Part shown: positions 17,052-58,435 of the stretch, in pieces
Numbering within the stretch: position 1 is the stretch's first letter
How the letters are laid out: each line of letters begins with the position of its first letter
NCBI RefSeq assembly: GCF_000143415.4
Contig: NW_003314312.1
Coordinates: forward strand, 735,510 to 799,509
Length of the DNA: 64,000 bases
Reading direction: 5' to 3'
From: Selaginella moellendorffii
Taxonomy: Eukaryota; Plantae; Lycopodiophyta
The notes under the pieces: model-generated
The model's input: the letters and a program-made list of their open reading frames with translations, nothing else
Databases searched by the model: none
Told to the model about the DNA's origin: nothing
Made by a program: the position numbers and the translations under genes

Positions 17052-19215
17052 ATGGGCATGGCAGCAGTGACTTTGCTCGAGGCGATTCGAATCGCGGACA
17101 AGGTTGGCACAATATCCACTTCCAGCAAGGTCTGTAGAAACCAACATAGGATCCTCATCGCGGCGGTTGGCTATGTCCGAGACTACCTCAAGCAAATCCA
17201 GGATCTCAACTTCGCGAGCAACGGGCCAGCCTTCGTGTGGGACGAAACCGTGGCTGTCCTTAACAGAGGCCTTCATCTCCTCAAGTCGTGCCAAGAAGGC
17301 AATTGGATCGCGCGGAGCCTGCTGTTCAAGGAAAGCTGCGATGAGTTCCAGAGCATTTATCCCGAGATCTACAACTGCGTCGAGCTCGTCAGCGTCTATC
17401 TCTTTCAGCTGGCACCGTCCACCTCGCACAGATCCAGGATTGCCGAGGCTTACAACTCGTGCCTCATGAGGCAGAACTTGAGCAGCATGCTGGAAGAAGC
17501 CGGAAGGAACGATCGGAAGGAGCTCATGACTCTCGCAATGAGCCAAGAGCCGGGAAGCCTGACGACCGAGAGCAAACAAGCCAAAGAGATACTCTGCTCC
17601 ATGCTCCTGGGAAACAAGTCAGTGATTAACCACAAGGAACTCAAGCTGACAACACACCTGGGACAAGGAGGTTTCGGAACCGTGTACGAAGCAATCTGGC
17701 TCGGTCACAAGTTTGCAGTGAAAGTCTTCCCTCAAGGTGACACCAGCTTCGCCAAAGAGCTCGCGGTTCTCGAAGCGGACAAGCATCCCAACGTGTTGCA
17801 CATCGCCAGCCAGTCTTTCGATGAAGAGAAGCAGCGGTACTCGCTGGTGATGGAGAAGATGGACATGGACCTGGCAAACTACGTCCTCAAGAAGAAGAAC
17901 TCTCTCCCGTTGCTGTCGATCGTGGCAGTGATGCTCCAAGTTGCTACTGGCATGGCCTGGCTTCACTCGAAGAATATAATCCACCGGGACCTCAAGCCGC
18001 AGAACATCTTGGTTGGCGAAGAAGACAACGATCTCGTGAGTATCAGGATTGCCGACTTTGGAGTCTCGAGGCCAAACTTCATCTCCTCCCAGATCGAAGC
18101 CGTTAGCATCCAAGGCACCAGGAACTTCATGGCACCGGAAGTGTGGAGCGGCGAGAACTACACGAAAAAGGCCGACGTTTACAGCTACGGGATGCTGATT
18201 TACCAGCTTGTCACTGGAAACGTTCCGTTCGAGGACGGGATGGACATGGAGCAAGTCCTTCGAGGCGAGCGTCCTGAGGTACCAGCAACCTGTCCAGAGT
18301 TCCTGTCGCAGCTCATGCGGGAATGCTGGAGCCACGATGCAAAAGAGAGGCCTTCCTTCTCGGATATCTGCGAGCGGCTGAAGCAGCTCAAGACCAGGAT
18401 CATCACTGGCACCGACTCCATCGACGAGTTACGAGCCATGTTGGTTGCAGCAGCCAGGTCATCTTCCTCTTATTCGTACTCATCGTCTTCCTCGTCGCAC
18501 AGCATGAACCTGGATTCTCCTGTCCAAGCACCTGAAGGGCTTTTGACCCAAAATCCTCCATCTCCCGTTGTCCAGGTAAACTCTTTTGCTTTTAGTAACT
18601 CCACCTTTAGTTTCAGCCGGTACCACACCGTCCTCAGCACGTCGCACCAGCAGCAAAGCCGGATAACAGGGCCGAGCTCTTCGAACTGGTGAAGAACGGC
18701 CTCGTCGAAAACGCCTTTGAGAAAGCTCTGTCCCTGAACGATCCTTCCACGGTCTGGTGGCTTTGCACCAAGGTAAGCCATTCACGTCCTCCAGCTGCTC
18801 ATCAAAGCTTTGTCAGCTCAGGTGGAGGATAGCGTCCTGCTCGCCTTCAGTGAATCAATGCTCATGGAAGTGGCCGAGCAAATCAACACCAACTTCGAGG
18901 AAGACACTGCTCGCAGGTTGCTCTGGATCAACGAGATCCTGTTCATCTTGCTGTACGTCAACGTCAATGGACAGACGTCACCTCGGATGCAGAGGATCTT
19001 GGAGGAGCTTTCACAGAACCTCCACGGCATGATGGCTATAACACCGTCAAACAGCGAGCTGGCGATGAAGCTGGCAGACGTGCTGAAAAGAACCAACGTG
19101 GGTCTTCGGGTTCGTATGAAGCTCTTCGTGTTATTCGTTTGATTCAAATCGTTTGTCGTCGCAGCGTATCCGATATGGGAACAAACTTCAGAAGAAAGGG
19201 AAAAGGAAACTGTGA
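17052..19215 (+). CDS. Array copy K1 (subtype A): helical N-domain + TKL kinase + EDC4/Ge-1-like C-domain
   Basis: Predicted exons 17052-18575, 18617-18772, 18822-~19109, 19165-19215 with phase-0 GT-AG introns. GQGGFG, AVK, HRDLKPQN, DFG and APE are intact. Intron 1 is only 41 nt. Confidence 0.8.
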
Positions 19216-19441
19216 AATAAAACAGCTATATATTTCCAGCGGAACACCGGTAGTTTCTGAGTATTGAGATGTTCTAATTTTCTGCCTGCCAAAAGTATCA
19301 ACCATGCTTCACGAAAGAACCATAAAGAACTTACCAATTCCCATTCGTAACTTCGTCTCATCCTGCCGGGGAAAATGTGAAGGAAACTTACGAGATAAAT
19401 ATCAAAGCACAAAGGTTTCACCATTCTTTAGTTCTTAAACT

Positions 19442-19866
19442 GGAAGGAGCTCATGGCTCTCGCAATGAACCGAGAGCCGGGAAGCCTGACGACCGAGACA
19501 GAACGAGCCAAAGAGATACTCTGCTCCATCCTCCTGGGAAACAAGTCAGTGATCAACCACAAGGAACTCAAGCTGAGAACACACCTGGGACAAGGAGCTT
19601 ACGGAACCGTGTACGAAGCAATGTGGCTCGGTCACAAGTTCACGGTGAAAGTCTTCCCTCAAGGTGACACCAGCTTTGCCAAAGAGCTCGCGGTTCTCGG
19701 AGCTCACAAGCATCCCAACGTGTTGCACATTGCCGGCCATTCTTTCGATGGAGAGAAGCAGCAGTACTCGCTGGTGATGGAGAAGATGGACATGGACCTG
19801 GCAAACTACCTCCTCAAGAAGAACTCCCTCTCGTTGCTGTCGATCGTGGCAGTGATGCTCCAAGTC
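19442..19866 (+). pseudogene. Internal fragment of a subtype B kinase
   Basis: Carries B-type residues (KLRTHLG, GAHKHPN, SLSLLS). It lacks the N-terminus and ends before HRD. Confidence 0.85.
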
Positions 19867-20141
19867 ACTACTAATGAATGGGAATCAAAATTGTGACCAT
19901 CGTCTCCCGCTACTGTCATCAAGGGCCTAAAACATACACCAATTTTCTTGTCTGATTAAAGTATGATTCCCAAACCAAAAAAAAATGCCTTAGGACTTAG
20001 AATTATTCAACAAGAAAAGTCCAGACAAAAAAAAAATGCCTTAGGACTTAGAATTATTCAAAAAGAAAAGTCCACGGTAGACTTTTCCCACGCTATACCT
20101 TTACAAGAATGGTGCGGTGCTGGTAGTGATCACCAACGGGC

Positions 20142-22298
20142 ATGGCAGCAGCGACTTTGCTCGAGGCAATTCGAATCGTGGACAAGCTTGGCACAATATC
20201 CACTTCCAGCAAGGTCTGTAGAAACCAACATAGGATCCTCATCGCGGCGGTCGGCTATGTCCGAGACTACCTCAAGCAAATCCAGGATCTCAACTTCGCG
20301 AGCAACGGGCCAGCCTTCGTGTGGGACGAAACCGTGGCTGTCCTTAACAGAGGCCTCCATCTCCTCAAGTCGTGCCAAGAAGGCAATTGGATCACGCGGA
20401 GCCTCCTGTTCGAGGAAAGCTGCAATGAGTTTCAGAGCATTTATCCCGAGATCTACAACTGCGTCGAGCTCGTCAGCGTCTATCTCTTTCAGCTGGCACC
20501 GTCCACCTCGCACAGATCCAGGATTGCCGAGGCTTACAACTCGTGCCTCATGAGGCAGAACTCGAGCAGCATGCTGGAAGAAGCCGAAAGGAACGATCGG
20601 AAGGAGCTCATGACTCTCGCAATGAGCCAAGAGCCGGGAAGCCTGACGACTGAGACAGAACGAGCCAAAGAGATACTCTGCTCCATGCTCCTGGGAAACA
20701 AGTCAGTGATTAACCACAAGGAACTCAAGCTGACAACACACCTGGGACAAGGAGCTTACGGAACCGTGTACGAAGCAATCTGGCTCGGTCACAAGTTTGC
20801 AGTGAAAGTCTTCCCTCAAGGTGACACCAGCTTCGCCAAAGAGCTCGCGGTTCTTGAAGCGGACAAGCATCCCAACGTGTTGCACATCGCCGGCCATTGT
20901 TTCGATGAAGAGAAGCAGCGGTACTCGCTGGTGATGGAGAAGATGGAGATGGACCTGGCAAACTACCTCCTCAAGAAGAAGAACTCTCTCCCGTTGCTGT
21001 CGATCGTGGCAGTGATGCTCCAAGTTGCTACTGGCATGGCCTGGCTTCACTCGAAGAATATAATCCACCGGGACCTCAAGCCGCAGAACATCTTGGTTGG
21101 CGAAGAAGACAACGATCTCGTGAGTATCAGGATTGCCGACTTTGGAGTCTCGAGGCCAAACTTCATCTCCTCCCAGATCGAAGCCGTTAGCATCCAAGGC
21201 ACCAGGAACTTCATGGCACCGGAAGTGTGGAGCGGCGAGCGCTACACGAAGAAGGCCGACGTTTACAGGTACGGGATGCTGATTTACCAGCTTGTCACTG
21301 GAAACGTTCCGTTCGAGGACGGGATGGACATGGAGCAAGTCCTTCGAGGCGAGCGTCCTGAGGTACCAGCAACCTGTCCAGCATGCGGGAATGCTGGAGC
21401 CACGATGCAAAAGAGAGGCCTTCCTTCTCGGATATCTGCGAGCGGCTGAAGCAGCTCAAGACCAGGATCATCACTGGCACCGACTCCATCGACAAGTTAC
21501 GAGCCAAGTTGGTTGCAGCAGCCAGGTCATCTTCCTCTTCTTCGTACTCGTCGTCTTCCTCGTCCTCGTCGCACAGCAGGACTCGAGTGAACCTGGATTC
21601 TCCTGTCCAAGCACCTGAAGGGCTTTCAACCCAAAATCCTCCATCTCCCGTTGTCCAGGTAAACTCTTTTGGTTTTAGTAACTCCACCTTTAGTTTCAGC
21701 CGGCACCACACCGTCCTCAGCACGTCGCACCAGCAGCAAAGCCGGATAACAGGGCCGAGCTCTTCGAACTGGTGAAGAACGGCCTCGTCAAAAACGCCTT
21801 TGAGAAAGCTCTGTCCCTGAACGATCCTTCCACGGTCTGGTGGCTTTGCACCAAGGTAATCCATTCACGTCCTCCAGCTGCTCATCAAAGCTTTGTCAGC
21901 TCAGTTGGAGGTTAGCATCCTGCCCGCCTTCAGTGAATCAATGCTCATGGAAGTGGCCGAGCAAATCAACACCAACTTCAAGGAAGACACTGCTCGCAGG
22001 TTGCTCTGGTTCGCCGAGATCCTGTTCATCTTGCTGTACGTCAACGTCAATGGACAGACATCACCTCGGATGCAGAGGATCTTGGAGGAGCTTTCACAGA
22101 ACCTCCACGGCATGATGGCTATAACACCGTCAAAGAGCGAGCTGGGGACGGAGCTGGCGGACGTGCTGAAAAGAACCAACGTGGGTCTTCGGGTTCGTAT
22201 GAAGCTCTTCGTGTTATTCGTTTGATTCAAATCGTTTGTCGTCGCAGCGTATCCGATATGGGAACAAACTTCAGAAGAAAGGGAAAAGAAAACTGTGA
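20142..22298 (+). pseudogene. Array copy K2 (subtype A), frameshifted
   Basis: Near-identical to K3 over exon 1, but a 16-nt deletion at ~21381 shifts the frame late in the kinase domain. Confidence 0.85.
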
Positions 22299-22510: not shown

Positions 22511-22622
22511 TTACTTCTTAAACTCGAGTAGACGGTGAAGATCCCAACCTTTTCTATCTGGCAGCAGCAGTAGCAGCCTTGGCAGCTTCCGGATCATCGC
22601 TCTCCGCTCAAAGAACGATTTT
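22511..22622 (-). pseudogene. 3' remnant of the mL80-like gene
   Basis: KSFFERRAMI... matches the 3' end of 58589-59314. Confidence 0.75.
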
Positions 22623-23783
22623 CCAGAAACTTCATGGCACCAGAAGTGTGGACCAGCGAGCGCTACACGAAGAAGGCCGACGTTTACAGCTACGGGATGC
22701 TGAGCTACCAGCTTGTCACTGGAAACACTCCGTTCAAGGTCGGGATGGACATGGAGCAAGTCCTTCGAGGCGAGCGTCCTGAGATACCAGCCACCTGTCC
22801 AGAGTTCCTGTCGCAGCTCATGCGGGAATGCTGGAGCCACGATGCAAAAGAGAGGCCTTCCTTCTCCGATATCTGCAAGCGGCTGAAGCAGCTCAAGTCC
22901 AGGATCATCACTGGCACCGACACCATCGACGAGCTACGAGCCAAGTAGGTTGAAGCAGCCAGGTCATCTTCCTCTTCTTCGTACTCGTCGTCTTCCTTGT
23001 CCTCGTTGCACAGCAGGACTCGAGTGAACCTGGATTCTCTTGTCCAAGCGACTGAGAAGCTCTGGACCCAAAATCCCCCGCCTTGTCGTGTCCAGGTAAA
23101 CTCTTTTGCTTTATGTAACTTCTGGAGCTCACCACCTTTGGTTTCAGCCGGTACCACACCGTCCTCACCAGGTCGCACCATTACCAAAACCAGATCAAAG
23201 GACCGAGCTCTTCGAACTGGTAAAGAACGGCCTCATCATAAACGCCTTCGAGAAAGCTCTGTCCCTGAACGATCCTTCCAGTCTGGTGGCTTTGCACCAA
23301 GGTAATCTGTTTACGCTCTCTGGCCGCTGATCACGCCCGTCCTTTGTCAACTCAGGTAGAGCATACCGTGCTGCTTGTCTTCAGTGAATCGATGCTCATG
23401 GCACTGACCGAGAAAATTAACACCAACTTCACGGAAGACACTGCTCGCAGGCTGGTCTGGATCGACGAGACTGCCGTCTTGCTGTTCAAAGACGTCAATG
23501 GATGGGCATCACCTCGGAAGATGAGGATCCTGGAGCAGCTTTCATAGAACCTCCACGGTATGATGGCCATAACACCACCAAAGAGTGAGCTGGGCATGAC
23601 CTTAACGAACATGCTGGAAGGCACCAACGTGTGGCTGGAGGTTTGTACATATGAAGCTCTTCGTTTCTTTCGTTTCCATCCAACAAACCTACATCGTTTT
23701 GTTGCAGCGTGTCCGGATTGCAGTGGAACAAAGTTCGATACATGAGCATCGTTGGCAGATACTCTCCAGCGGAACACCGGTAT
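22623..23783 (+). pseudogene. 3' half of a subtype B kinase gene
   Basis: Starts at RNFMAPE and shares the premature TAG (22946-22948) with K4. Further lesions lie in the C-domain exons. Confidence 0.85.
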
Positions 23784-30455: not shown

Positions 30456-32646
30456 ATGGCAGCAGCGACTTTGCTCGAGGCAATTCGAATCGTGGACAAG
30501 CTTTGCACAATATCCACTTCCAGCAAGGTCTGTAGAAACCAACATAGGATCCTCATCGCGGCGGTCGGCTATGTCCGAGACTACCTCAAGCAAATCCAGG
30601 ATCTCAACTTCGCGAGCAACGGGCCAGCCTTCGTGTGGGACGAAACCGTGGCTGTCCTTAACAGAGGTCTCCATCTCCTCAAGTCGTGCCAAGAAGGCAA
30701 TTGGATCACGCGGAGCCTGCTGTTCGAGGAAAGCTGCAATGAGTTTCAGAGCATTTATCCCGAGATCTACAACTGCGTCGAGCTCATCAGCGTCTATCTC
30801 TTTCAGCTGGCACCGTCCACCTCGCACAGATCCAGGATTGCCGAGGCTTACAACTCGTGCCTCATGAGGCAGAACTCGAGCAGCATACTGGAAGAAGCCG
30901 AAAGGAACGATCGGAAGGAGCTCATGACTCTCGCAATGAGCCAAGAGCCGGGAAGCCTGACGACTGAGACAGAACGAGCCAAAGAGATACTCTGCTCCAT
31001 GCTCCTGGGAAACAAGTCAGTGATTAACCACAAGGAACTCAAGCTGACAACACACCTGGGACAAGGAGCTTACGAAACCGTGTACGAAGCAATCTGGCTC
31101 GGTCACAAGTTTGCAGTGAAAGTCTTCCCTCAAGGTGACACCAGCTTCGCCAAAGAGCTCGCGGTTCTTGAAGCGGACAAGCATCCCAACGTGTTGCACA
31201 TCGCCGGCCATTGTTTCGATGAAGAGAAGCAGCGGTACTCGCTGGTGATGGAGAAGATGGAGATGGACCTGGCAAACTACCTCCTCAAGAAGAAGAACTC
31301 TCTCCCGTTGCTGTCGATCGTGGCAGTGATGCTCCAAGTTGCTACTGGCATGGCCTGGCTTCACTCGAAGAATATAATCCACCGGGACCTCAAGCCGCAG
31401 AACATCTTGGTTGGCGAAGAAGACAACGATCTCGTGAGTATCAGGATTGCCGACTTTGGAGTCTCGAGGCCAAACTTCATCTCCTCCCAGATCGAAGCCG
31501 TTAGCATCCAAGGCACCAGGAACTTCATGGCACCGGAAGTGTGGAGCGGCGAGCGCTACACGAAAAAGGCCGACGTTTACAGGTACGGGATGCTGATTTA
31601 CCAGCTTGTCACTGGAAACGTTCCGTTCGAGGACGGGATGGACATGGAGCAAGTCCTTCGAGGCGAGCGTCCTGAGGTACCAGCAACCTGTCCAGAGTTT
31701 CTGTCGCAGCTCATGCGGGAATGCTGGAGCCACGATGCAAAAGAGAGGCCTTCCTTCTCGGATATCTGCGAGCGGCTGAAGCAGCTCAAGACCAGGATCA
31801 TCACTGGCACCGACTCCATCGACGAGTTACGAGCCAAGTTGGTTGCAGCAGCCAGGTCATCTTCCTCTTCTTCGTACTCGTCGTCTTCCTCGTCCTCGTC
31901 GCACAGCAGGACTCGAGTGAACCTGGATTCTCCTGTCCAAGCACCTGAAGGGCTTTCAACCCAAAATCCTCCATCTCCCGTTGTCCAGGTAAACTCTTTT
32001 GGTTTTAGTAACTCCACCTTTAGTTTCAGCCGGCACCACACCGTCCTCAGCACGTCGCACCAGCAGCAAAGCCGGATAACAGGGCCGAGCTCTTCGAACT
32101 GGTGAAGAACGGCCTCGTCAAAAACGCCTTTGAGAAAGCTCTGTCCCTGAACGATCCTTCCACGGTCTGGTGGCTTTGCACCAAGGTAATCCATTCACGT
32201 TCTCCAGCTGCTCATCAAACCTTTGTCAGCTCAGGTGGAGCAAAGCGTCCTGCTCCTCTTCAGTGAATCAATGCTCATGGAAGTGGCCGAGCAAATCAAC
32301 ACCAACTTCAAGGAAGACACTGCTCCCAGGTTGCTCTGGATCGAGGATATCCTGGACATCTTGCTGTTCGTCGACAATGTCAATGGACAGACATCACCTC
32401 GGATGCAGAGGATCTTGGAGAAGCTTTCACAGAACCTCCACGGCATGATGGCTATAACACCGCCAAACAACGAGCTGGGGATGAAGCTGGCGAAAGCGCT
32501 GGAAGATACCAACATGGGTCTTCATGTACGTATGAAACTCTTCGTGTTATTCGTTTGATTCAAATCGTTTGTCGTCGCAGCATATCCGAGTTGAGAACAG
32601 CAAAGCTGAGAAGAAAGGGAAAAGAAAACAGGGACTTATGATGTGA
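30456..32646 (+). CDS. Array copy K3 (subtype A), open reading frame with G-loop and subdomain IX substitutions
   Basis: Same four-exon layout as K1, with a 41-nt intron 1 (31989-32029). GQGAYETVY and DVYRYG deviate from consensus. Confidence 0.75.
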
Positions 32647-33943: not shown

Positions 33944-36177
33944 ATGGCAGCAGCGACTTTGCTCGAGGCGATTCGAATCGCGGACAAGGTTGGCACAAGA
34001 TCCACGAACACAAACTCGAGCAAGGTCTGTAGAAACCAATGTAGGATCCTCATCGCAGCGGTCGGCTATGTCCGAGACTACCTCAAGCAAATCCAGGATC
34101 TCAACTTCGCGAGCAACGGGCCAGCCTTCGTGTGGGACGAAACCGTGGCTGTCCTTAACAGAGGCCTCCATCTCCTCAAGTCATGCCAAGAGGGCGATTG
34201 GATCGCCCGGAGCCTGCTGTTCGAGGAAAGCTGCGATGAGTTCCAGGGCATTTACCACGAGATCTACAACTGCGTCGAGCTCGTCAGCGTCTATCTCTTT
34301 CAGCTGACACCGTCCACCTCGCACAGATCCAGGATTGCCGAGGCTTACAACTCGTGCCTCATGAGGCAAAACTCGAGCAGCATGCTGGAAGAAGCCGGAA
34401 GGAACGATCGGAAGGAGCTCATGACTCTCGCAATGAACCAAGAACCAGGAAGCCTGACGACCGAGACAGAACGAGCCAAAGAGATACACTGCTCCATGCT
34501 CCTGGGAAACAAGTCAGTGATCAACCACAAGGAACTCAAGCTGAGAACACACCTGGGACAAGGAGCTTACGGAACCGTGTACGAAGCAATGTGGCTCGGT
34601 CACAAGTTCGCGGTGAAAGTCTTCGCTCAAGGTGACACCAGCTTCGCCAAAGAGCTCGCGGTTCTCGGAGCTCACAAGCATCCCAACGTGTTGCACATTG
34701 CCGGCCATTCTTTCGATGGAGAGAAGCGGCAGTACTCGCTGGTGATGGAGAAGATGGACATGGACCTGGCAAACTACCTCCTCAAGAAGAACTCCCTCTC
34801 GTTGCTGTCGATCGTGGCAGTGATGCTCCAAGTCGCTACTGGCATGGCTTGGCTTCACTTGAAGAACGTAATCCACCGGGACCTCAAGCCGCAGAACATC
34901 TTGGTTGGCGAAGAAGACAACGATCTCGTGAGTATCAGGATTGCCGACTTTGGAGTCTCGAGGCCCGATTTCATCTCCTCCCTCATCAGCGAAGCCACCC
35001 CCAAGCAAGGCACCAGAAACTTCATGGCACCAGAAGTGTGGACCAGCGAGCGCTACACGAAGAAGGCCGACGTTTACAGCTACGGGATGCTGAGCTACCA
35101 GCTTGTCACTGGAAACACTCCGTTCAAGGTCGGGATGGACATGGAGCAAGTCCTTCGAGGCGAGCGTCCTGAGATACCAGCCACCTGTCCAGAGTTCCTG
35201 TCGCAGCTCATGCGGGAATGCTGGAGCCACGATGCAAAAGAGAGGCCTTCCTTCTCCGATATCTGCAAGCGGCTGAAGCAGTTCAAGTCCAGGATCATCA
35301 CTGGCACCGACTCCATCGACGAGCTACGAGCCAAGTAGGTTGAAGCAGCCAGGTCATCTTCCTCTTCTTCGTACTCGTCGTCTTCCTTGTCCTCGTTGCA
35401 CAGCAGGACTCGAGTGAACCTGGATTCTCTTGTCCAAGCGACTGAGAAGCTCTGGACCCAAAATCCCCCGCCTTGTCGTGTCCAGGTAAACTCTTTTGCT
35501 TTATGTAACTTCTGGAGCTCACCACCTTTGGTTTCAGCCGGTACCACACCGTCCTCACCAGGTCGCACCATTACCAAAACCAGATCAAAGGACCGAGCTC
35601 TTCGAACTGGTAAAGAACGGCCTCATCATAAACGCCTTCGAGAAAGCTCTGTCCCTGAACGATCCTTCCACAGTCTGGTGGCTTTGCACCAAGGTAATCT
35701 GTTTACGCTCTCTGGCCGCTGATCACGCCCGTCCTTTGTCAACTCAGGTAGAGCATACCGTGCTGCTTGTCTTCAGTGAATCGATGCTCATGGCACTGGC
35801 CGAGAAAATCAACACCAACTTCACGGAAGACACTGCTCGCAGGCTGGTCTGGATCGACGAGATTGGCGTCTTGCTGTTGAAAGACGTCAATGGATGGGCA
35901 TCACCTCGGAAGATGAGGATCCTGGAGCAGCTTTCACAGAACCTCCACGGTATGATGGCCATAACACCACCAAAGAGTGAGCTGGGCATGACCTTGACGA
36001 ACATGCTGGAAGGCACCAACGTGTGGCTGCAGGTTCGTACATATGAAGCTCTTCGTTTCTTTCGTTTCCATCTCCTTGATTCACATCGTTTTGTTGCAGC
36101 GTATCCGGGTTGCTGTGGAAAACAAAGTTCGATACATGAGCATCGTTGGCGGATATTTTCCAGCGGAATACCGGTAG
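33944..36177 (+). pseudogene. Array copy K4 (subtype B) with a premature stop right after the kinase domain
   Basis: TTG>TAG at 35336-35338 gives a 464-aa N-domain+kinase ORF. The downstream exons are still open. Confidence 0.8.
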
Positions 36178-37587: not shown

Positions 37588-37687
37588 NNNNNNNNNNNNN
37601 NNNNNNNNNNNNNNNNNNNNNNNNNNNNNNNNNNNNNNNNNNNNNNNNNNNNNNNNNNNNNNNNNNNNNNNNNNNNNNNNNNNNNNN

Positions 37688-41737: not shown

Positions 41738-44700
41738 ATGGCAGCAAAAAGTTTGGCCGAGGCAATTCGAATCTCGGACAAAGTTGCCGCAAGGTCCACG
41801 AACACAAACTCGAGCAAGGTCTGTAGGAACCAATGTAGGATCTTCTTAGCAGCGGTCGACCATGTCGGAGACTACCTCAAGCGAATCCAGGATCTCAACT
41901 TCGCGAGCACTGGGACAGCTTTCGTGTGGGACGAAACCGTGGCTGTCCTTAAGAGAGGCCTCCATCTCCTCAAGTCGTGCCAAGAAGGCAATTGGATCGC
42001 GCGGAGCCTGCTGTTCAAGGAAAGCTGCGATGAGTTCCAGAGCATTTATACCGTCCACCTCGGTAAGATCCAAGATTGCCGAAGCTTACAACTCGTGCCT
42101 CATGAGGCAAAACTCGAACAGCATGCTGGAAGAAGCCGGAAGGAATGACAGGAAGGCGCTCATGGCTCTCGCAATGAGCCAAGAGCCGGGAAGCCTGACG
42201 ACCGAGAGCGAGCAAGCCAAAGAGATACTTTGCTCCATGCTCCTGGGAAACAAGTCAGTGATTAACCACAAGGAACTCAAGCTGACAACACACCTGGGAC
42301 AAGGCGGTTTCGGAACCGTGTACGAAGCAATCTGGCTCGGTCACAAGTTTGCAGTGAAAGTCTTCCCTCAAGGTGACAAGAGCTTCGCCAAAGAGCTCGC
42401 GGTTCTCGAAGCGGACAAGCATCCCAACGTGTTGCACATCGCCGGTCATTCTTTCGATGAAGAGAAGCAGCGGTACTCGCTGGTGATGGAGAAGATGGAC
42501 ATGGACCTGGCAAACTACGTCCTCAAGAAGAACTCTCTCCCGTTGCTGTCGATCGTGGCAGTGATGCTCCAAGTTGCTACTGGCATGGCGTGGCTTCACT
42601 CGAAGAATATAATCCACCGGGACCTCAAGCCGCAGAACATCTTGGTTGGCGAAGAAGACAACGATCTCGTGAGTATCAGGATTGCCGACTTTGGAGTCTC
42701 GAGGCCAAACTTCATCTCCTCCCAGATCGAAGCCGTTAGCATCCAAGGCACCAGGAACTTCATGGCACCGGAGGCGTGGAGCAGCGAGCGCTACACGAAA
42801 AAGGCCGACGTTTACAGCTACGGGATGCTGATTTACCAGCTTGTCACTGGAAACGTTCCGTTCGAGGACGGGATGGACATGGAGCAAGTCCTTCGAGGCA
42901 AGCGTCCTGAGATACCAGCCACCTGTCCAGAGTTCCTGTCGCAGCTCATGCGGGAATGCTGGAGCCACGATGCGAAAGAGAGGCCTTCCTTCTCGGATAT
43001 CTGCGAGCGGCTGAAGCAGCTCAAGACCAGGATCATCACTGGCATCGAGTCCATCGACGAGTTACGGGTCAAGTTGGTTGAAGTAGCCGGGTCGTCTTCC
43101 TCTTCTTCGTACTCGTCGTCTTCCTCATCCTCGTCGCACAGCAGGACTCGAGTGAACCTGGATTCTCTTGTCCAAGCGACTGAAGGGCTTTGGACCAAAA
43201 ATCCTCCATCTCCCCTTGTACAGGTAAACTCTTTTGTTTTTAGTAACTTCCGGTGCTCATCGTGTTTAGTTTCAGCCGGTACCACACCGTCCTCAGCACT
43301 TCGCACCAGTAGCAAAACCGGATAACAGGACCGAGCTCTTCGAACTGGTGAAGAACGGCCTCGTCAGAAACGCCTTCGAGAAAGCTCTGTCCCTGAACGA
43401 TCCTTCCATGGTCTGGTGGCTTTGCACCAAGGTAATCCATTCACGTCCTCCAGCTGCTCATCAAAGCTTTGTCAGCTCAGGTGGAGCATACCGTCCTGCT
43501 TGTCTTCAGTGAATCAATGCTCATGGAACTGGCCGAGCAAATCAACACCAACTTCAAGGAAGACACTGCTCGCAGGTTGCTCTGGATCGACGAGATTGGC
43601 ATCTTGCTGTTCAAAGACGTCAATGGACAGGCATGGTCATCACCTCGGGTGCTGAGGATCTTGGAGCAGCTTTCACAGAACTTCCACGGCATGATGGCTA
43701 TAACACCGCCAAAGAGCGAGCTGGGGATGAAGCTGGTGAACATGCTGGGTGGCACCAACATGGGTCTCCAGGTTCGTATGAAGCTCTTCGTGTTATTCAT
43801 TTGATTCAAATCGTTTGTTGTCGCAGCATATCTGTTAGGCACCAGCTTTGACTACGTGGTCAACATCGGTCAAAGGGTATATGAAGGCATGTTAGGGTAA
43901 GGGACTTAACTTACCCTAGGGCTCACAGTGGAGTGGTGGTGCAGTGGAACTTTTGAGGTAGCTCAGGGGTGGTTGGGTGGTGAGGAACCTCAAGAGGTGG
44001 CATAGCATAATCTAGGGCAACTAGATTTTTGTCTTTTTGCGCCGGATCATAACATTGGTATCAGAGAAGTTGGTTGCGATGGCCGACCAAGCTGAACGCT
44101 GGAATCCTATTGTCGATGGTGGTGCCAACAATGGTGCTGACGAAGCTGCAGAGATTTAGACCATTCAAGATGTGGTTCATGAGCTGCGAGCCCTTAACCG
44201 AAATCAGTAAGAGATGCAAGATGAGATGCATGGCATGATGGATACCATGCGTGGGCGTGTTGAGGCACTCGAGGCTGGACGGGGTAGCGCTCCAAGTAAA
44301 CCTTCTTTGGTAGATCGACTCAAAATTCCAAATTTTTCCGGTGATGGTGGTGTGGACGAGTGTCTCGCTTGGCTAGCCAATGTGAAGAAGTTCTTGGCTG
44401 CTAGAGGAACTCCAGATGCAGAGGCTTTAGTGGCTATTCCGATGGTTTTGCGTGATGCGGGTTTTCGATGGTGGAATTGGCTTGAGGAGTCCCGTGTTGT
44501 GGATAAGAAACCACCAGTGTCTACCATGGATGAGTTTGAGGTTGCTTTTCATTTATGTTTTGCCCCTCATTACGACATGGAGAATGCTCGTACAGAACTT
44601 TGACATTTTCAGCAAAGGAAAATGATGCTCGGGGACTATATTGAGAAGCTTACTTGCTTGATTAGTCGTGTTCCAACGAAGGATCCAGATCAGAACAAGT

Positions 44701-47700
44701 CCTACTTCATTGATGGCCTACATAGTGAGAGCATGCGGCAACACTTGCGTCATTCTCAGCCTACAAAGAGTTTGAAGGAGCTCTTTGATGTGGCTCGTCG
44801 ACTTGACAATGATAAGCACAAGTCTCGCAAGCGTTTGCGGAGTCCTTCTGTCGAGAATCGTCGTGATGATCACCATGGACACAAGGATGGGAACAAGCAT
44901 CACAAATTGAAGTCAGTGGTGACTACTTCGGATGCAAAGGGGTCCAAGAAGTAGAAGTTCTTTGTGAAGAATTATAGACAAGGTTGTCATCATTGCGGCG
45001 AACTTGGACANNNNNNNNNNNNNNNNNNNNNNNNNNNNNNNNNNNNNNNNNNNNNNNNNNNNNNNNNNNNNNNNNNNNNNNNNNNNNNNNNNNNNNNNNN
45101 NNNNNNNNNNNNNNNNNNNNNNNNNNNNNNNNNNNNNNNNNNNNNNNNNNNNNNNNNNNNNNNNNNNNNNNNNNNNNNNNNNNNNNNNNNNNNNNNNNNN
45201 NNNNNNNNNNNNNNNNNNNNNNNNNNNNNNNNNNNNNNNNNNNNNNNNNNNNNNNNNNNNNNNNNNNNNNNNNNNNNNNNNNNNNNNNNNNNNNNNNNNN
45301 NNNNNNNNNNNNNNNNNNNNNNNNNNNNNNNNNNNNNNNNNNNNNNNNNNNNNNNNNNNNNNNNNNNNNNNNNNNNNNNNNNNNNNNNNNNNNNNNNNNC
45401 TTGTGTCGAGGGGCTGGAAGTGTTGGTTGGCAAAACCACACTTGTGGAGACTTTTTATCTCACGGATATCCATCGTGTGGATCTCATTCTTGGGATGCCA
45501 TGGTTGGCAAAGGTGGATCCAGAGATAAAGTGGAGCATTAAGCGTATCTCGCTGGAGTATGGTGGCGTTAAAGATGTGTGGTTTGGCGAGGGCGTTCAAC
45601 CACCAGTTGTTATGCTCTCTGCTACATCTTTGAAACGGGCTTGTCATAATAAAAAAGCACTTTCAAGTTACTTGCTGTTTGTTCGTGACTTGGGGGACCA
45701 AGGCACGTGTGGGGGAGAAGCAGCAGTACAGGATATATTTGACGAGTTTTCTGATGTTTTTCCATATGAACTTCCTCATGGATTACCTCCGTTACGAGGT
45801 GTGGAGCATGGGATTACATTGGAGTCGGGGATGCGGCCAATTTACCAGTGTCCATTTTGGTTAAGTTATGCGCAGGAGCAAGAAGTTCAACGACAAGTCA
45901 AGGAGTTACTTGAGTTTGGATTTATTCAGCCAAGTAAGTCTCCGTTTGGTGCTCCAGTCTTGCTTGTGAAGAAGAAAGACGGTTCAATGCGGTGAAGGAC
46001 AAGATTTACCGTGCTTTAAACAAGAAGACAGTGAAGGACAAGATGCCGATGCCACGTGTGGATGATATCCTGGACAAGCTTGGTGAAGCACGAGTGTTTA
46101 CTAAGATTGATCTGAGGAGTGGATATCATCAGATTGCAATGGATGATGCATCTATCTCCAAGACGGCATTCAACACAAGTTTCGGACATTTTGAGTTTAC
46201 CGTTATGCCGTTTGGTTTGACGAATGCACTGGCCACATTTACTCAGTTGATGACGGAGGTATTTGGGCGTTATCTTCATGAGTTTGTGAAGATTTTCTTG
46301 GACGATATTCTTGTTTTTAGCAAGAATATGGAGGAGCATAGGGTGCATTTGCGCAAGGTTCTTTTGTTACTTTGAGATAGCAAACTTTATGCGAAGAAGA
46401 GCAAATGTGAATTTGCAAAGTCGGAGGTGGAATATCTAGGCCATATTGTGACATCTAAGGGTGTCAAGACAGATCCAGGAAGGTGGCTATGGTGGAAAAC
46501 TGGCCTACACTGACTACAGTGGCCGAGTTGTGCAGTTTTCTTGGTATGGCTAGTTACTACCGACGTTTCCAGCATAAGTTTGCAGAGGTGGCTATTCCTT
46601 TGACGTGGTTGTTACGCAAGAATGTGCCATTCGAGTGGAAGAAGCCACAAGAGGAGAGTTTTGTAGCGCTGAAATGATTGTTGAGCGAGGCTCTAGTGCT
46701 TCGCATTGCTGATCCATTGAAACCTTACGAGGTGACATGCGATGTGAGTGGTTATGCACTGGGAGGAGTTTTTATGCAAGAGGGACAGCCTATTGCATGT
46801 GAGAGTCGAACTTTGAATTCCGCAAAGCAATGTTATTCCACATATGAGCAAGAGTTACTCTCTATTGTTCATGCTTTGTAGACGTGGCGGCACTATCTTT
46901 ATGGTGCAGTGTTCGTGGTGTTGACAGATCACAAACCACTTGTGTATCTTTTCACACAGAAGGAGTTGAACACTAGACAAGCTCGTTGGATGGTCAAACT
47001 CATGGAGTTTGGGGAGTTTCCTATTGAGCATTGTCCGGGAAAATCCAATGTGGTGGCAGATGCTTTATCTCGTGTTCGTCATATGACGACATTACAAACA
47101 CGATTTTGTCATCATTTGAGTAAGGTGGTCAGTGGGTTTGGACAGTTGGTTGAGCATGCTCAGGCTCAGGATGCTGAGGTGGCCTCTTTGCGTGACCAGA
47201 TGGAAGCTCCTTTCTCATTGGTGGATGGGATTCTCTATTACAATGGCCGTGTATATTTGCCACGGGTGGATGCGTTAATTACTCAAGTTTTATTCCACTA
47301 TCATGATCGTCCAGAGGCCGGTCATTTTGGGGGGAAGAAGACGTATAAATTGATTAAGCGCAACTTTTATTGGAGGAATATGAAGGTTGATATCCTCAAG
47401 TATTGTAAATCATGCGAGCTTTGTCAGCGGGTTAAGGTGCCACGAGAGAAGCCGGGGGGACTTTTGCAACCTTTACCTATTCCTCAGAGCCGTTGGTGTA
47501 GTATCTCTATGGACTTCATCACTTGTTTGCCACGAACACAGAGGCAAAAGGAGCAAGTATGGGTTATAGTGGATCGGTTGACAAAGTATGTGCGGTTGTT
47601 GGCTCTTCGGAAGATTGTCACTGCCTCAGACTTGGCTGCGGTTTACTTGGAGAAGGTTTTTCCTGATTTTGGTTTGCCAGAGGACATCATTAGTGATCGA

Positions 47701-48804
47701 GATTCAAAGTTCACCAGTGGATTTTGGAAAAGCTTTGCAAAGGTTATACAAGTGACTTTGAAACTCTCGAGTGGAGATCATCCTTAGACGGATGGGCAAA
47801 CCGAGCGTGTAAATCAAATGGTGGAGGATATGCTACATTGTAGCATTGGTCAAAGGCAAGGACAGTGGGATTTTTATCTTCCGTTGGTGCAATTTGCTTA
47901 CAACAATAGCCAACACAGTGGAACCAAGCTAAGTCCTTACTTTGCCATGTTTGGAAGGCATCCTCAAATAGTAGTGGAGTTGGGATTGCATTTGAGTAAA
48001 GACATTCAAGATAAGCTTGATTCCAAGGCAACTGATCTGGCCACAGAACTTGATGAGATCTTGGTGGTGTGCAAACAAAATTTGCAAGCAGCTCAGGATA
48101 GAGCGGAGAAGTTTGCCAATGAGCATCACCAATTCCAGGAATATAAGGTGGGTGGTCTGATCTTTGTACGCGTGATCTTTCCGTCAAGTGAGCGGTAGAA
48201 CACCTTGGTGCCTTTACGGACAGGGAAGAGTGATAAACTTTCCCATCGATATGCTAGTCCATATGAAGTGCTGGAGCACTTTGGTAAAGCGGCTTATCGG
48301 GTGTGGCTGCTAGCTGGGGTGAAAATTCATCCGGTATTTTATGTCAGCCAGTTGAAAGGTGTACTATTTCGGAGTGACGGGCCCAATGCCTCCTTGATGT
48401 ATACAGCTGTGGAAGATGGACCAGAAGCTTGAGTAGGATTCCCTAGAAAGGGTGATCACAAATTCAACTCGTCCTTGGGACAAGGACTTTGTTGGGGGGG
48501 AAGAATTGTTAGGCGCCAGCTTTGACTACGTGGTCAACGTCAGTCAAAAGGGGGCTCAAGGGTATATGAAGGCATGTTAAGGTAAGGGACTTAACCTACC
48601 CTAGGGCTCACAGTGGAGTGGCGGCGCAATGGAGCTTTTGAGGTAGTTTGGGGGTGGTTGGGTGGTGAGGTGGTGTAGCATAATCTAGGGCAACTAGATT
48701 TTTGTCTTTTTGCGCCGGATCATAACAGTATCTGAGTTGCAGTTGACAGCAAAGTTCAACACATGAGAGTCCTTGGAGGATACTTTCCAGTGGAACACCG
48801 GTAG
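41738..48804 (+). pseudogene. Array copy K5 (subtype A'), frameshifted and interrupted by a Gypsy element
   Basis: A 53-nt deletion at ~42050 relative to K7 shifts the frame. Exon 4 starts at 43827 and resumes at 48733 (..GGYFPVEHR*). Confidence 0.85.
43833..48727 (+). mobile_element. Full-length degenerate Ty3/Gypsy LTR retrotransposon
   Basis: LTRs 43833-44054 and 48507-48727 (TG...CA); PBS TGGTATCAGAG at 44056; PPT before the 3' LTR; gag, PR (DLILGMPWL), RT (FLDDIL), RNase H, INT (ISMDF) order; imperfect 5-bp TSD ATATC/GTATC; many stops. Confidence 0.95.
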
Positions 48805-49698: not shown

Positions 49699-51932
49699 AT
49701 GGCAGCAGCGAATTTGCTCGAGGCGATTCGAATCGCGGACAAGGTTGGCACAAGATCCACGAACACAAACTCGAGCAAGGTCTGTAGAAACCAATGTAGG
49801 ATCCTCATCGCGGCGGTCGGCTATGTCCGAGACTATCTCAAGCAAATCCAGGATCTCAACTTCGCGAGCAACAGGCGAGCCTTCGTATGGGACGAAACCG
49901 TGGCTGTCCTTAAAAGAGGCCTCCATCTCCTCAAGTCATGCCAAGAGGGCGATTGGATCGCTCGGAGCCTGCTGTTTGAGGAAAGCTGCGATGATTTCCA
50001 GAGCATTTACGCCGAGATCTACAACTGCGTCGAGCTCGTCAGCGTCTATCTCTTTCAGCTGGCACCGTCCACCTCGCACAGATCCAGGATTGCCGAGGCT
50101 TACAACTCGTGCCTCATGAGGCAGAATTCGAGCAGCATGCTGGAAGAAGCCGGAAGGAACGATCGGAAGGAGCTCATGGCTCTCGCAATGAACCAAGAGC
50201 CGGGAAGCCTGACGACCGAGACAGAACGAGCCAAAGAGATACTCTGCTCCATGCTCCTGGGAAACAAGTCAGTGATCAACCACAAGGAACTCAAGCTGAG
50301 AACACACCTGGGACAAGGAGCTTACGGAACCGTGTACGAAGCAATCTGGCTCGGTCACAAGTTCGCGGTGAAAGTCTTCGCTCAAGGTGACACCAGCTTC
50401 GCCAAAGAGCTCGCGGTTCTCGGAGCTCACAAGCATCCCAACGTGTTGCACATTGCCGGCCATTCTTTCGATGGAGAGAAGCGGCAGTACTCGCTGGTGA
50501 TGGAGAAGATGGACATGGACCTGGCAAACTACCTCCTCAAGAAGAACTCCCTCTCGTTGCTGTCGATCGTGGCAGTGATGCTCCAAGTCGCTACTGGCAT
50601 GGCTTGGCTTCACTCGAAGAACGTAATCCACCGGGACCTCAAGCCGCAGAACATCTTGGTTGGCGAAGAAGACAACGATCTCGTGAGTATCAGGATTGCC
50701 GACTTTGGAGTCTCGAGGCCCGATTTCATCTCCTCCCTCATCAGCGAAGCCACCCCCAAGCAAGGCACCAGAAACTTCATGGCACCAGAAGTGTGGACCA
50801 GCGAGCGCTACACGAAGAAGGCCGACGTTTACAGCTACGGGATGCTGAGCTACCAGCTTGTCACTGGAAACATTCCGTTCAAGGTCGGGATGGACATGGA
50901 GCAAGTCCTTCGAGGCAAGCGTCCTGAGATACCAGCCACCTGTCCAGAGTTCCTGTCGCAGCTCATGCGGGAATGCTGGAACCACGATGCGAAAGAGAGG
51001 CCTTCCTTCTCGGATATCTGCGAGCGGCTGAAGCAGCTCAAATCCAGGATCATCACTGGCACCGACTCCACCGACGAGCTACGAGCCAAGTTGGTTGAAG
51101 CAGCCAGGTCATCTTCCTCTTCTTCGTACTCGTCGTCTTCCTCGTCCTCGTCGCACAGCAGGACTCGAGTAAACCTGGATTCTCTTGTCCAAGCGACTGA
51201 GAAGCTTTGGACCCAAAATCCCCCGCCTTCCCGTGTCCAGGTAAACTCTTTTGCTTTATGTAACTTCTGGAGCTCACCACCTTTGGGTTCAGCCGGTACC
51301 ACACCGTCCTCACCACGTCGCACCATTACCAAAACCAGATAAAAGGACCGAGCTCTTCGAACTGGTAAAGAACGGCCTCATCATAAACGCCTTCGAGAAA
51401 GCTCTGTCCCTGAACGATCCTTCCACAGTCTGGTGGCTTTGCACCAAGGTAATCTGTTTACGCTCTCTGGCCGCTGATCACGCCCGTCTTTTGTCAACTC
51501 AGGTAGAGCATACCGTGCTGCTTGTCTTCAGTGAATCGATGCTCATGGCACTGGCCGAGAAAATCAACACCAACTTCACGGAAGACACTGCTCGCAGGCT
51601 GGTCTGGATCGACGGGATTGGCGGCTTGCTGTTGAAAGACGCCAATGGATGGGCATCACCTCGGAAGATGAGGATCCTGGAGCAGCTTTCACAGAACCTC
51701 CACGGTATGATGGCCATAACACCACCAAAGAGTGAGCTGCGCATGACCTTGACGAACATGCTGGAAGGCACCAACATGTGGCTGCAGGTTCGTACATATG
51801 AAGCTCTTCGTTTCTTTCGTTTCCATCTCCTTGATTCACATCGTTTTGTTGCAGCGTGTCCGGGTTGCAGTGGAAAACAAAGTTCGATACATGAGCATCG
51901 CTGGCGGATACTTTCCAGCGGAACACCGGTAG
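49699..51932 (+). CDS. Array copy K6 (subtype B), apparently intact
   Basis: Exon 1 is 49699-51240, followed by a 52-nt intron. Exons 2-4 are open and end RVRVAVENKVRYMSIAGGYFPAEHR*. Catalytic motifs are intact. Confidence 0.82.
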
Positions 51933-56206: not shown

Positions 56207-58435
56207 ATGGCAGCGAAAAGTTTGGCCCAGGCAATTCGAATCTCGGACAAAATTGCCGCAAGGTCCACGAACACAAACTCGAGCAAGGTCTGTAGGAACC
56301 AATGTAGGATCTTCTTAGCAGCGGTCGGCCATGTCCGAGACTACCTCAAGCGAATCCAGGATCTCAACTTCGCGAGCACTGGGACAGCTTTCGTGTGGGA
56401 CGAAACCGTGGCTGTCCTTAAGAGAGGCCTCCATCTCCTCAAGTCGTGCCAAGAATGCAATTGGATGGCGCGGAGCCTGCTGTTCAAGGAAAGCTGCGAT
56501 GAGTTCCAGAGCATTTATCCCGAGATCTTCAACTGTGTCGAGCTCGTCAGCGTCTATCTCTTTCAGCTGGCACCGTCCACCTCGGTAAGATCCAAGATTG
56601 CCGAAGCTTACAACTCGTGCCTCATGAGGCAAAACTCGAACAGCATGCTGGAAGAAGCCGGAAGGAATGACAGGAAGGCGCTCATGGCTCTCGCAATGAG
56701 CCAAGAGCCGGGAAGCCTGACGACCGAGAGCGAACAAGCCAAAGAGATACTTTGCTCCATGCTCCTGGGAAACAAGTCAGTGATTAACCACAAGGAACTC
56801 AAGCTGACAACACACCTGGGACAAGGCGGTTTCGGAACCGTGTACGAAGCAATCTGGCTCGGTCACAAGTTTGCAGTGAAAGTCTTCCCTCAAGGTGACA
56901 AGAGCTTCGCCAAAGAGCTCGCGGTTCTCGAAGCGGACAAGCATCCCAACGTGTTGCACATCGCCGGTCATTCTTTCGATGAAGAGAAGCAGCGGTACTC
57001 GCTGGTGATGGAGAAGATGGACATGGACCTGGCAAACTACGTCCTCAAGAAGAAGAACTCTCTCCCGTTGCTGTCGATCGTGGCAGTGATGCTCCAAGTT
57101 GCTACTGGCATGGCATGGCTTCACTCGAAGAATATAATCCACCGGGACCTCAAGCCGCAGAACATCTTGGTTGGCGAAGAAGACAACGATCTCGTGAGTA
57201 TCAGGATTGCCGACTTTGGAGTCTCGAGGCCAAACTTCATCTCCTCCCAGATCGAAGCCGTTAGCATCCAAGGCACCAGGAACTTCATGGCACCGGAGGT
57301 GTGGAGCAGCGAGCGCTACACGAAAAAGGCCGACGTTTACAGCTACGGGATGCTGATTTACCAGCTTGTCACTGGAAACGTTCCGTTCGAGGACGGGATG
57401 GACATGGAGCAAGTCCTTCGAGGCAAGCGTCCTGAGATACCAGCCACCTGTCCAGAGTTCCTGTCGCAGCTCATGCGGGAATGCTGGAGCCACGATGCAA
57501 AAGAGAGGCCTTCCTTCTCGGATATCTGCGAGCGGCTGAAGCAGCTCAAGACCAGGACCATTACTGGCACCGACTCCATGGACGAGTTACGAGCCAAGTT
57601 GGTTGAAGCAGCCAGGTCATCTTCCTCTTCTTCGTACTCGTCGTCTTCCTCGTCCTCGTCGCACAGCAGGACTCGAGTGAACATGGATTCTCTTGTCCAA
57701 GCGACTGAGAAGCTTTGGACCCAAAATCCTCCTCCTCCCTTTGTCCAGGTAAACTCTTTTGCTTTTAGTAACTTCCGGAGCTCGCCACGTTTGGTTTCAG
57801 CCGGTACCACACCGTCCTCAGCACGTCGCACCAGCAGCAAAGCCGGATAACAGGACCGAGCTCTTCGAACTGGTGAAGAATGGCCTCGTCAAAAACGCCT
57901 TCGAGAAAGCTCTGTCCCTGAACGATCCTTCCACGGTCTGGTGGCTTTGCACCAAGGTAATCCATTCACGTCCTCCAGCTGCTCATCAAAGCTCGTCCTT
58001 TGTCAACTTAGGTGGACCATACCGTCCTGCTTGTCTTCAGTGAATCAATGCTCATGGAACTGGCCGAGCAAATCAACACCAACTTCAAGGAAGACACTGC
58101 TCGCAGGTTGCTCTGGCTCGACGAGATTGGAATCTTGCTGCTCAAAGACGTCAATGGATGGGCATGGTCATCACCTCGGATGCTGAGGATCCTGGAGCAG
58201 CTTTCACAGAACCTCCACGGCATGATGGCTACAACACCGTCAAAGAGCGAGCTGGGGATGAAGCTGGCGAAAGCGCTGGAAGGTACCAACGTGGGTCTCC
58301 AGGTTCGTATGAAGCTCTTCGTGTTATTCGTTTGATTCAAATCGTTTGTCGTCGCAGCATGTCCGAGTTGCAGTGGACAGCAAAGCTCAATACATGAGAG
58401 TCCTCGGAGGATACTTTCCAGCGGAACACCGGTAG
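56207..58435 (+). CDS. Array copy K7 (subtype A'), apparently intact, ~688 aa spliced
   Basis: Predicted exons 56207-57748, 57801-57956, 58012-58302, 58358-58435. All introns are phase-0 GT-AG and 52-55 nt long. Confidence 0.85.

Follow-up and report, generated by a model that had tools for sequence, protein, structure and literature searches.

Tandem kinase genes of Selaginella moellendorffii carry a C-terminal domain captured from an EDC4/VARICOSE gene

In a window of 64,000 nucleotides from the lycophyte Selaginella moellendorffii (NCBI RefSeq assembly GCF_000143415.4, contig NW_003314312.1, positions 735,510 to 799,509 of the forward strand; positions below count from its first letter), tblastn and a seven-way DNA alignment identified seven tandem copies (K1 to K7) of one kinase-fusion gene together with two fragments. 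Each copy encodes a helical N-terminal domain, a protein kinase of the tyrosine kinase-like (TKL) group, and a serine-rich linker, followed by a tail of about 150 amino acids whose coding region is cut by short phase-0 introns. This tail is a true C-terminal domain of the EDC4/Ge-1/VARICOSE (VCS) proteins (EDC4_C, PF21289). A first-pass annotation of the DNA letters had suggested this identity by eye, and it is now borne out by profile, reciprocal profile, pairwise comparison, fold, and a shared intron position. The locus thus arose from a gene for a helical N-domain and an active-type TKL kinase, which captured the end of a streptophyte EDC4/VARICOSE gene, gained a short fourth exon, and was amplified to seven copies. 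Since then, the array has been in turnover through frameshifts, a premature stop, a transposon insertion, and exchange of sequence among the copies.

The Pfam EDC4_C profile, which has a cut-off of 27 bits, matched four spliced RefSeq paralogs with 28.1, 30.7, 26.2, and 28.4 bits over profile positions 3-115 of 121, and exons 2 and 3 of K7 gave weak collinear half-matches when they were searched singly. For the reciprocal comparison, a profile built from six tails was run against 1.84 billion (1.84e9) representative proteins and yielded 56 matches. The non-self matches that were examined were EDC4 proteins, with Ge1_WD40 and a C-terminal EDC4_C, or EDC4_C-only fragments, and none of them had a kinase domain. 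The best non-self match was the EDC4 protein of S. moellendorffii itself (XP_024516677, E 2e-15), and BLASTP aligned the tail to S. moellendorffii EDC4 with 34% identity over 149 amino acids (E 1e-23). An AlphaFold (AF2) model of the tail, calculated from a 40-sequence alignment with a mean predicted local distance difference test (pLDDT) score of 89.8, is all-alpha and ARM/HEAT-like. Its top solved match is the Ge-1C domain of Drosophila (2VXG; Foldseek template modelling (TM) scores 0.59/0.75), on which VIA-align superimposed 130 of 131 residues with a Z-score of 16.6 and a root-mean-square deviation of 2.6 A. S. pombe Pdc1 followed with a Z-score of 14.5. The profile and structure searches that the annotation had recommended thus gave a significant match to EDC4-C in profile and in fold. 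A sequence search of the PDB with the tail profile returned nothing significant, so that Ge-1C emerged from fold comparison only. A shape search of the ESM Atlas with the tail model was uninformative, and no large cluster pairing a kinase with EDC4_C was found there.

As stated in the annotation, a kinase precedes the domain where a WD40 domain would normally stand. The N-terminal 514 amino acids consist of the helical domain and the protein kinase and gave no WD40 match, which distinguishes the fusion from a full-length EDC4/VARICOSE orthologue; the true EDC4 orthologue (P0121) lies on a different scaffold. The remark in the annotation that no described protein of such architecture was known agrees with our literature searches, which found no paper on a kinase joined to EDC4_C. 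We also considered a different source of the tail among families that share its fold, such as the C-terminal domain of TORTIFOLIA1/SPIRAL2, since the SPIRAL2 C-domain is the third structural match (Z-score 14.0) and language-model features give a TOR1L1_C cluster a score of 0.89. However, all non-self profile matches that were checked are EDC4 proteins or EDC4_C-only fragments, Pfam reports EDC4_C, the plant's own EDC4 aligns best in pairwise comparison, and an intron position is shared with EDC4. On these grounds a SPIRAL2/TOR1L origin was rejected, and we regard it as extremely improbable.

The intron evidence also reveals how the domain was acquired. The last intron of Selaginella EDC4 is a phase-0 intron (WLCNQ/VD) that coincides in position and phase with intron 2 of the fusion genes (WLCTK/VE), the position that the annotation had proposed to compare with VCS genes. 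The preceding EDC4 intron (PDK/VLSLQHVEE) lies 4-7 residues from the acceptor of fusion intron 1, and the EDC4 stop codon coincides with the donor of fusion intron 3. Thus, exons 2 and 3 of the fusion genes are the counterparts of the two final coding exons of EDC4, which were captured as DNA together with their intron, at or next to a phase-0 intron, whereas exon 4 is a new extension. Since the tail is present in all seven copies, the capture preceded the amplification. In a tree with VCS C-terminal domains, the tails form a very long branch (about 2.7 substitutions per site) whose placement is not settled; an approximately unbiased (AU) test did not reject a clade of the tails with Selaginella EDC4 (p 0.19). 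The tree therefore gives no date for the capture.

Splicing K7 as proposed in the first-pass annotation (Table 1) yields one open reading frame (ORF) of 688 amino acids, with three introns of 52, 55, and 55 nt, all of phase 0 and with GT..AG ends. The tail peptide that had been quoted for K1 was reproduced exactly, and the three short introns and their splice sites are kept in every copy. Intron 1 of K1 to K3 as proposed earlier would have only 41 nt; the RefSeq models take an acceptor 21 nt further on and thus an intron of 62 nt. Exons 2 and 3 are free of stop codons in all seven copies and differ by in-frame indels only (156 nt for exon 2; 285, 288, or 291 nt for exon 3), whereas the introns vary by lengths that are no multiples of three (41/52, 49/54/55, and 55/67 nt). 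The ratio of nonsynonymous to synonymous substitution rates (dN/dS) of the tail between the older paralog groups is 0.4-0.55. This combination is expected only if the tail is translated in the frame of exon 1. The annotation was right that the raw ORFs hide the fusion, but RefSeq already holds spliced models with precomputed Pfam hits, among them P0003, P0006, and P0008 for paralogs of K7; in P0002, the model of a K7-like gene, intron 1 is retained.

RNA evidence came from Logan contigs of four studies that were mapped to positions 54500-59500. Coverage is nearly absent from the 1.5 kb upstream of K7, which shows that the data behave like RNA. The junctions of K7 introns 2 and 3, with GT..AG ends, are present in contigs of run X1. 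In three of the four runs, the listed contigs pass unspliced through all three K7 introns, and several of them bear letters that belong to a sister copy or allele. Among the contigs of the four runs, none was seen to link exon 1 to exon 2 of K7, and a search for short transcript-derived protein fragments across this junction found none. The junctions that the annotation wished to see confirmed were therefore recovered for introns 2 and 3, but not for the step from the kinase exon into the tail, and intron-retaining and antisense RNA is abundant. The missing junction is a weak negative, because such contigs are probably interrupted at sites where both spliced and unspliced forms occur. All four runs also contain junctions with CT..AC ends, which equal GT..AG introns of the minus strand, at 56765-56815 and 58516-58574. 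The first, of 51 nt, lies within the K7 kinase exon, is flanked by a 7-nt repeat (CCTGGGA), and is identical in sequence in K1, K2, K3, K5, and K7. Its reading as a sense intron or a reverse-transcription artefact was rejected, given the CT..AC ends, the 7-nt flanking repeat, and its dominance in four studies. One 1.1-kb contig (contigs spanning 58191-59350) joins a convergent downstream gene to K7 exons 3 and 4. Together with the minus-strand junctions, this indicates an abundant natural antisense transcript that overlaps K7. The intron at 58516-58574 belongs to this convergent neighbour, which comprises a lysine/arginine-rich ORF of 255 amino acids (58589-59435, minus strand) without a Pfam match and is expressed in 4/4 runs. 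Over the 5' end of K7 (56224-56336), RNA contigs carry letters of the K5/P0002 type, e.g., G>A at 56328 and C>G at 56336, so that the sequenced plants express an allele or copy with a K5-like N-terminus.

It could also be that the fusion is not functionally expressed, i.e., that the cluster is decaying, its transcripts mostly keep intron 1, so that a kinase-only protein results, or run antisense, and the tail exons are relics. The unspliced contigs without an exon 1-exon 2 junction, the minus-strand introns in all four runs, the retained intron 1 of P0002, the stop in front of the K4 tail, and the broken copies K2 and K5 would fit such a situation. Nevertheless, we consider it very unlikely, as the tail exons are open in every copy with in-frame indels only while the introns are free to vary, the older groups show a dN/dS of 0.4-0.55, the splice sites are kept throughout, K7 introns 2 and 3 are removed in run X1, and the absent junction counts for little.

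The tandem array of fusion genes claimed in the annotation was recovered with all seven copies, of which only K1, K3, K6, and K7 are intact, whereas K2 and K5 are frameshifted and K4 has a stop between kinase and tail (Table 1). The K1 tail, ending in ..KKGKRKL, is identical to that of RefSeq P0010. Two RefSeq models in this region join parts of different copies: P0001 fuses the frameshifted K2 and the partial copy that follows (20142-23780), and P0004 (30456-36177) is a chimera of K3 exons 1-2 and K4 exons 3-4 that bypasses the stop-bearing exon 1 of K4. The assembly gap at 37588-37687 is intergenic, between the end of K4 (36177) and the start of K5 (41738), and the gap at 45011-45399 lies within the insertion that interrupts exon 4 of K5, a copy that is already broken; thus, no intact reading frame relies on either gap. 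The scaffold of this array carries the RefSeq models P0001, P0002, P0004, P0006, and P0010. Another scaffold, GL377620 (L002), shares 98.3% identity across the subtilase region at the flank (L002 1-6579 = window 7343-13924) but has the array in a different order, so the two scaffolds represent haplotypes. On that other haplotype, the K5-like gene P0003 is uninterrupted, with related repeat sequence further downstream. In a comparison of the K7 kinase exon with RefSeq, S. moellendorffii proteins were 86-99% identical and all others at most 37%. In the RefSeq search and the tail-profile search, the family of kinase plus EDC4_C was detected in a single species.

Table 1. Copies of the kinase-fusion gene, fragments, and parts of K7 within the window.
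Feature	Position	Strand	Description
K1, intact	17058..19215	+	exons 17058-18575, 18617-18772, 18822-19109, 19165-19215; from alignment
Kinase-domain fragment	19444..19872	+	family amino acids ~154-297; tblastn
K2, broken	20142..22298	+	frameshift in kinase exon near amino acid 413 (exon 1 = 1517 nt); tail exons open
Partial 3' copy	22622..23780	+	amino acids ~354-685 (end of kinase, linker, tail); tblastn
K3, intact	30456..32646	+	exons 30456-31988, 32030-32185, 32235-32525, 32581-32646; Gly-loop GQGAYE
K4, premature stop	33944..36177	+	stop RAK*VEA between kinase and tail, ORF end 35338; tail exons 35538-35693, 35748-36032, 36100-36177 open
K5, broken	41738..43838	+	18-amino-acid deletion and frameshift near amino acid 103 (N-domain); exon 4 truncated (HIC*)
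Insertion in K5 exon 4	43833..48727		~4.9 kb; Ty3/gypsy integrase/RNase H ORF 46909-47787 and assembly gap 45011-45399
K5 exon 4 remainder	48730..48801	+	displaced; ending ..VAVDSKVQHMRVLGGYFPVEHR*
K6, intact	49699..51932	+	686 amino acids, RefSeq P0006; exons 49699-51240, 51293-51448, 51503-51787, 51855-51932
K7, intact	56207..58435	+	688 amino acids; exons 56207-57748, 57801-57956, 58012-58302, 58358-58435
K7 helical N-terminal region	56207..56791	+	amino acids 1-195; DUF7792/MLKL_NTD-like, weakly supported
K7 protein kinase domain	56792..57538	+	amino acids 196-444; Pfam PK_Tyr_Ser-Thr E 7e-53; Gly-loop GQGGFG
K7 intron 1	57749..57800	+	junction of kinase exon and captured exons; contigs unspliced, no joined contig seen
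K7 EDC4_C/Ge-1C domain	57801..58302	+	exons 2 and 3 with intron 2; homologous to last two coding exons of Selaginella EDC4
K7 intron 2	57957..58011	+	WLCTK/V; removal seen in RNA contigs of run X1
K7 intron 3	58303..58357	+	donor where the EDC4 ORF stops; removal seen in run X1
Antisense ORFs, ~238 amino acids	17619-18335, 20703-21410, 31017-31733, 34514-35230, 42255-42968, 50269-50985, 56777-57493	-	opposite kinase exons

The kinase domain of K7 matched the Pfam profiles Pkinase and PK_Tyr_Ser-Thr with E values of about 1e-52. In every copy, the catalytic motifs are present: a Gly-loop (GQGGFG or GQGAYG, with the K3 variant listed in Table 1), AVKV, HRDLKPQN, DFG, and APE. The kinase thus looks active and TKL-like, and from its motifs it is predicted to be catalytically competent. 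The N-terminal region probably forms a four-helix bundle with a brace of the MLKL_NTD-like type, which is a weakly supported assignment from modelling. Its AF2 model shows four long helices and two to three brace-like helices at a low pLDDT of 56. In six of the seven copies, DUF7792 matched the N-domain below threshold (best E 6e-4). The Pfam profile MLKL_N did not match, and a word-based search with the N-domain found only Selaginella paralogs. An Atlas model of the domain resembles the MCAfunc/PLAC8 family with a TM score of 0.65, which we take to be the MLKL_NTD-PLAC8 type described in PMC11297308. The best natural solved match of the AF2 model is the N-domain of human MLKL, with a Z-score of 11.1 that is within the background for helical bundles.

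The tails have changed faster than the kinases. Between K1 and K6, the nonsynonymous divergence (dN) is 0.16 for the tail and 0.06 for the kinase, i.e., the tail is about 2.5 times faster. In three young sister pairs, the tails have accumulated 53.8 nonsynonymous versus 9.2 synonymous changes, which is above the neutral share, though not significantly (binomial p 0.066). Within a single pair, the synonymous divergence (dS) is unequal from one gene segment to another, which indicates exchange among the copies. In order to see which parts of the domain changed, five tails were compared with the 46 columns that are at least 70% conserved in VCS orthologues. In all five tails, 18 of these 46 positions are kept, mostly core residues, whereas 21 are lost in all five. 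The loop conserved in VCS orthologues (LNPxDPxxAPHxR) is the most variable and indel-rich stretch of the tails.

For the function of the fusion proteins, we tentatively prefer a reading by analogy, in which they would be intracellular immune sensors of the kinase-fusion type, closest to Pm13/MLKL-K, with the EDC4_C tail as an integrated bait. The tail would mimic the distal C-terminal domain of VCS, a scaffold of processing bodies (P-bodies), so that a pathogen or viral protein with affinity for VCS-C would be bound by the tail as well; this binding might release or activate the kinase and the N-domain and thereby lead to a defence or cell-death signal. Such a role would fit better than that of a housekeeping P-body kinase because of the Pm13-like domain order, the birth-and-death array, and the fast, surface-biased change of the tail. 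Birth and death are evident from the three broken copies among seven, the transposable element insertion, and the different copy order on the other haplotype scaffold. In support of the sensor reading, the TAV protein of Cauliflower mosaic virus (CaMV) binds exactly the corresponding Arabidopsis domain, VCS-C2 (amino acids 1181-1341; PMC6504953), P-bodies are reported as associates or targets of a rust candidate effector and of Pseudomonas syringae effectors (PMC4749346, PMC13108548), and Pm13, with its order of MLKL_NTD, brace, and active kinase, is a proven resistance protein (PMC11297308).

Several points weigh against a sensor. The MLKL-like N-domain is read from the low-confidence model with its high background Z-scores for helical bundles, and a sequence search of the PDB with it found nothing. 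The N-regions of the nearest relatives in Sphagnum gave no significant match by BLASTP and hhalign, whereby the brace alone was aligned (E 0.07). Among the window ORFs of at least 200 amino acids that were scanned, there was neither a partner of the NLR type (nucleotide-binding protein with leucine-rich repeats) nor another immune gene. The nonsynonymous excess is not significant at p 0.066 and would also fit relaxed constraint, and a good VCS mimic would keep the surface, whereas 21 of the 46 conserved positions are gone from every tail compared. The exon 1-exon 2 junction is missing from the contigs, and unspliced or antisense forms make up much of the RNA that covers K7. Kinase-fusion immune receptors have been described from grasses (PMC11297308, PMC10951266), and their transfer to a lycophyte is one of analogy.

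Only a little less likely than the sensor, in our view, is that the proteins are P-body-targeted signalling kinases without any pathogen involved, whose Ge-1C tail would bring the kinase to P-bodies or VCS complexes, where it would phosphorylate decapping or decay factors and tune mRNA turnover, e.g., under stress. Plant kinases such as SnRK2s and MPKs phosphorylate VCS, DCP1, and PAT1. The tail retains the EDC4_C fold and core residues, dN/dS is below 1 between the old paralog groups, the kinase looks catalytically competent by its motifs, and the distal C-terminal region of Ge-1 was reported to be required for P-body localisation (Jinek et al. 2008, as cited in PMC3877753). For a housekeeping regulator, however, a fast-turning array of seven copies, three of them broken, with differences between haplotypes is unusual. 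The family is known from a single species, and the polar positions and the loop conserved in VCS are the most altered parts of the tails. Furthermore, the part of human EDC4 to which the binding of DCP2 and XRN1 and the oligomerisation have been mapped is its proximal helical region (974-1265) and not distal Ge-1C (PMC4005699). As this proximal region was not captured, the tail alone is unlikely to scaffold decapping, and the description of the domain in the first-pass annotation as established for decapping-complex scaffolding was overstated. As a default possibility, the tail might be a fold-conserving module with a new role unrelated to P-bodies, such as autoinhibition of the kinase or homo-oligomerisation among paralogs. 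The very long branch after capture, with its unsettled placement among VCS, the small number of VCS-conserved positions (18 of 46, mostly core) present in all tails, and the fact that the same fold does other jobs in SPIRAL2 and katanin p80 would agree with such a module. Nothing specific counts against it, since the data do not separate it from a sensor or a P-body kinase, but we consider it improbable.

With the distal domain of EDC4/Ge-1/VARICOSE (PF21289; 2VXG of Drosophila Ge-1, 4Q2S of S. pombe Pdc1), the tail shares sequence family, fold, position and phase of the last intron, and the C-terminal place. In the fusion it follows a kinase and a serine-rich linker, whereas EDC4 has a Ge1_WD40 propeller, a linker, and the proximal helical region, which the fusion lacks; moreover, about half of the VCS-conserved positions are changed and an extra exon of 16-25 amino acids follows the domain. 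Pm13 (MLKL-K) of wheat/Aegilops and related kinase fusion proteins (PMC11297308, PMC10951266) have the order of helical bundle, brace, and putatively active Ser/Thr kinase that is predicted for the Selaginella proteins. Like the Selaginella family, they are a lineage-specific expansion discussed in terms of integrated decoys. In Pm13, however, nothing follows the kinase where the Selaginella proteins have the EDC4_C tail, and its N-domain is a recognised MLKL_NTD, whereas the Selaginella match is sub-threshold or structural only. MLKL_NTD-kinase fusions were found only in Poaceae (PMC11297308), so that the Selaginella family, if it is of the MLKL type, would be an independent case, and a far more distant one. 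Arabidopsis MLKL1-3 and animal MLKL also combine a four-helix bundle, a brace, and a kinase-fold domain, as predicted for the Selaginella proteins, several of which are named 'mixed lineage kinase domain-like' in RefSeq. In contrast to the Selaginella copies with all their catalytic motifs, these proteins have pseudokinase domains and no EDC4_C tail, and the N-domains of the Arabidopsis proteins are DUF1221 (PMC11297308), which was not matched in the Selaginella N-domain.

A further parallel exists to the integrated domains of NLR and tandem-kinase receptors, such as the HMA-like domain in WTK4 (bioRxiv 2025.08.26.672365), where a copy of a domain from a pathogen-targeted host protein likewise sits on a signalling chassis within a fast-evolving cluster. 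The Selaginella fusion, however, has neither an NLR nor a tandem kinase, its bait role is purely inferred, and no effector is known. The kinase domains nearest to the family outside Selaginella are those of the Sphagnum proteins P0022, P0023, and P0030 (35-37% identity), which also have a helical N-region, with a weak MLKL_N match in P0022. They differ in that the EDC4_C tail is absent, the N-regions show no detectable homology to those of Selaginella, and P0022 contains a second, partial kinase domain. In Sphagnum P0023 and P0030-P0032, a long hydrophobic, probably multi-pass membrane region follows the kinase, which is another unusual C-terminal attachment to this type of kinase. Overall, a kinase fused to an integrated domain is a known design, and the combination of kinase and EDC4_C found here is real, with no description of it in our literature searches.

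Very few NLR genes are known from this lycophyte. In this context, it is possible, and we hold it still more cautiously than the sensor role as such, that the family represents a non-NLR type of immune receptor in this plant, in which an MLKL-like executioner/kinase chassis with a copy of the VARICOSE C-domain would detect pathogens or viruses attacking the mRNA-decapping scaffold. This would be an ancient, independent invention of the kinase-fusion integrated decoy outside flowering plants and the first P-body guard by mimicry. If the family works like the grass kinase fusions, the design principle would be either old or repeatedly invented. A sensor would also mark the VCS C-terminal domain as a pathogen target worth guarding and would provide a small model genome for non-NLR intracellular immunity. 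If the proteins are P-body kinases instead, they offer a direct handle on the phosphoregulation of decapping. Whichever function holds, the locus shows in clean form how exons were captured at a phase-0 intron and then amplified in tandem; it is in principle a datable example, although our tree gave no date.

Opposite every kinase exon lies an antisense ORF of about 238 amino acids in the exact codon-complement frame, without a Pfam match. It was rejected as a gene and is read as a by-product of a sense strand without TTA, CTA, and TCA codons. The array is flanked upstream by a subtilase gene (Peptidase_S8 and fn3_6; 7391-9606) and downstream by an expansin-like DPBB gene (61639-62442). In L002, the first kinase copy lies within the span of a Vps18 gene model of the opposite strand (L002 2315-13677).

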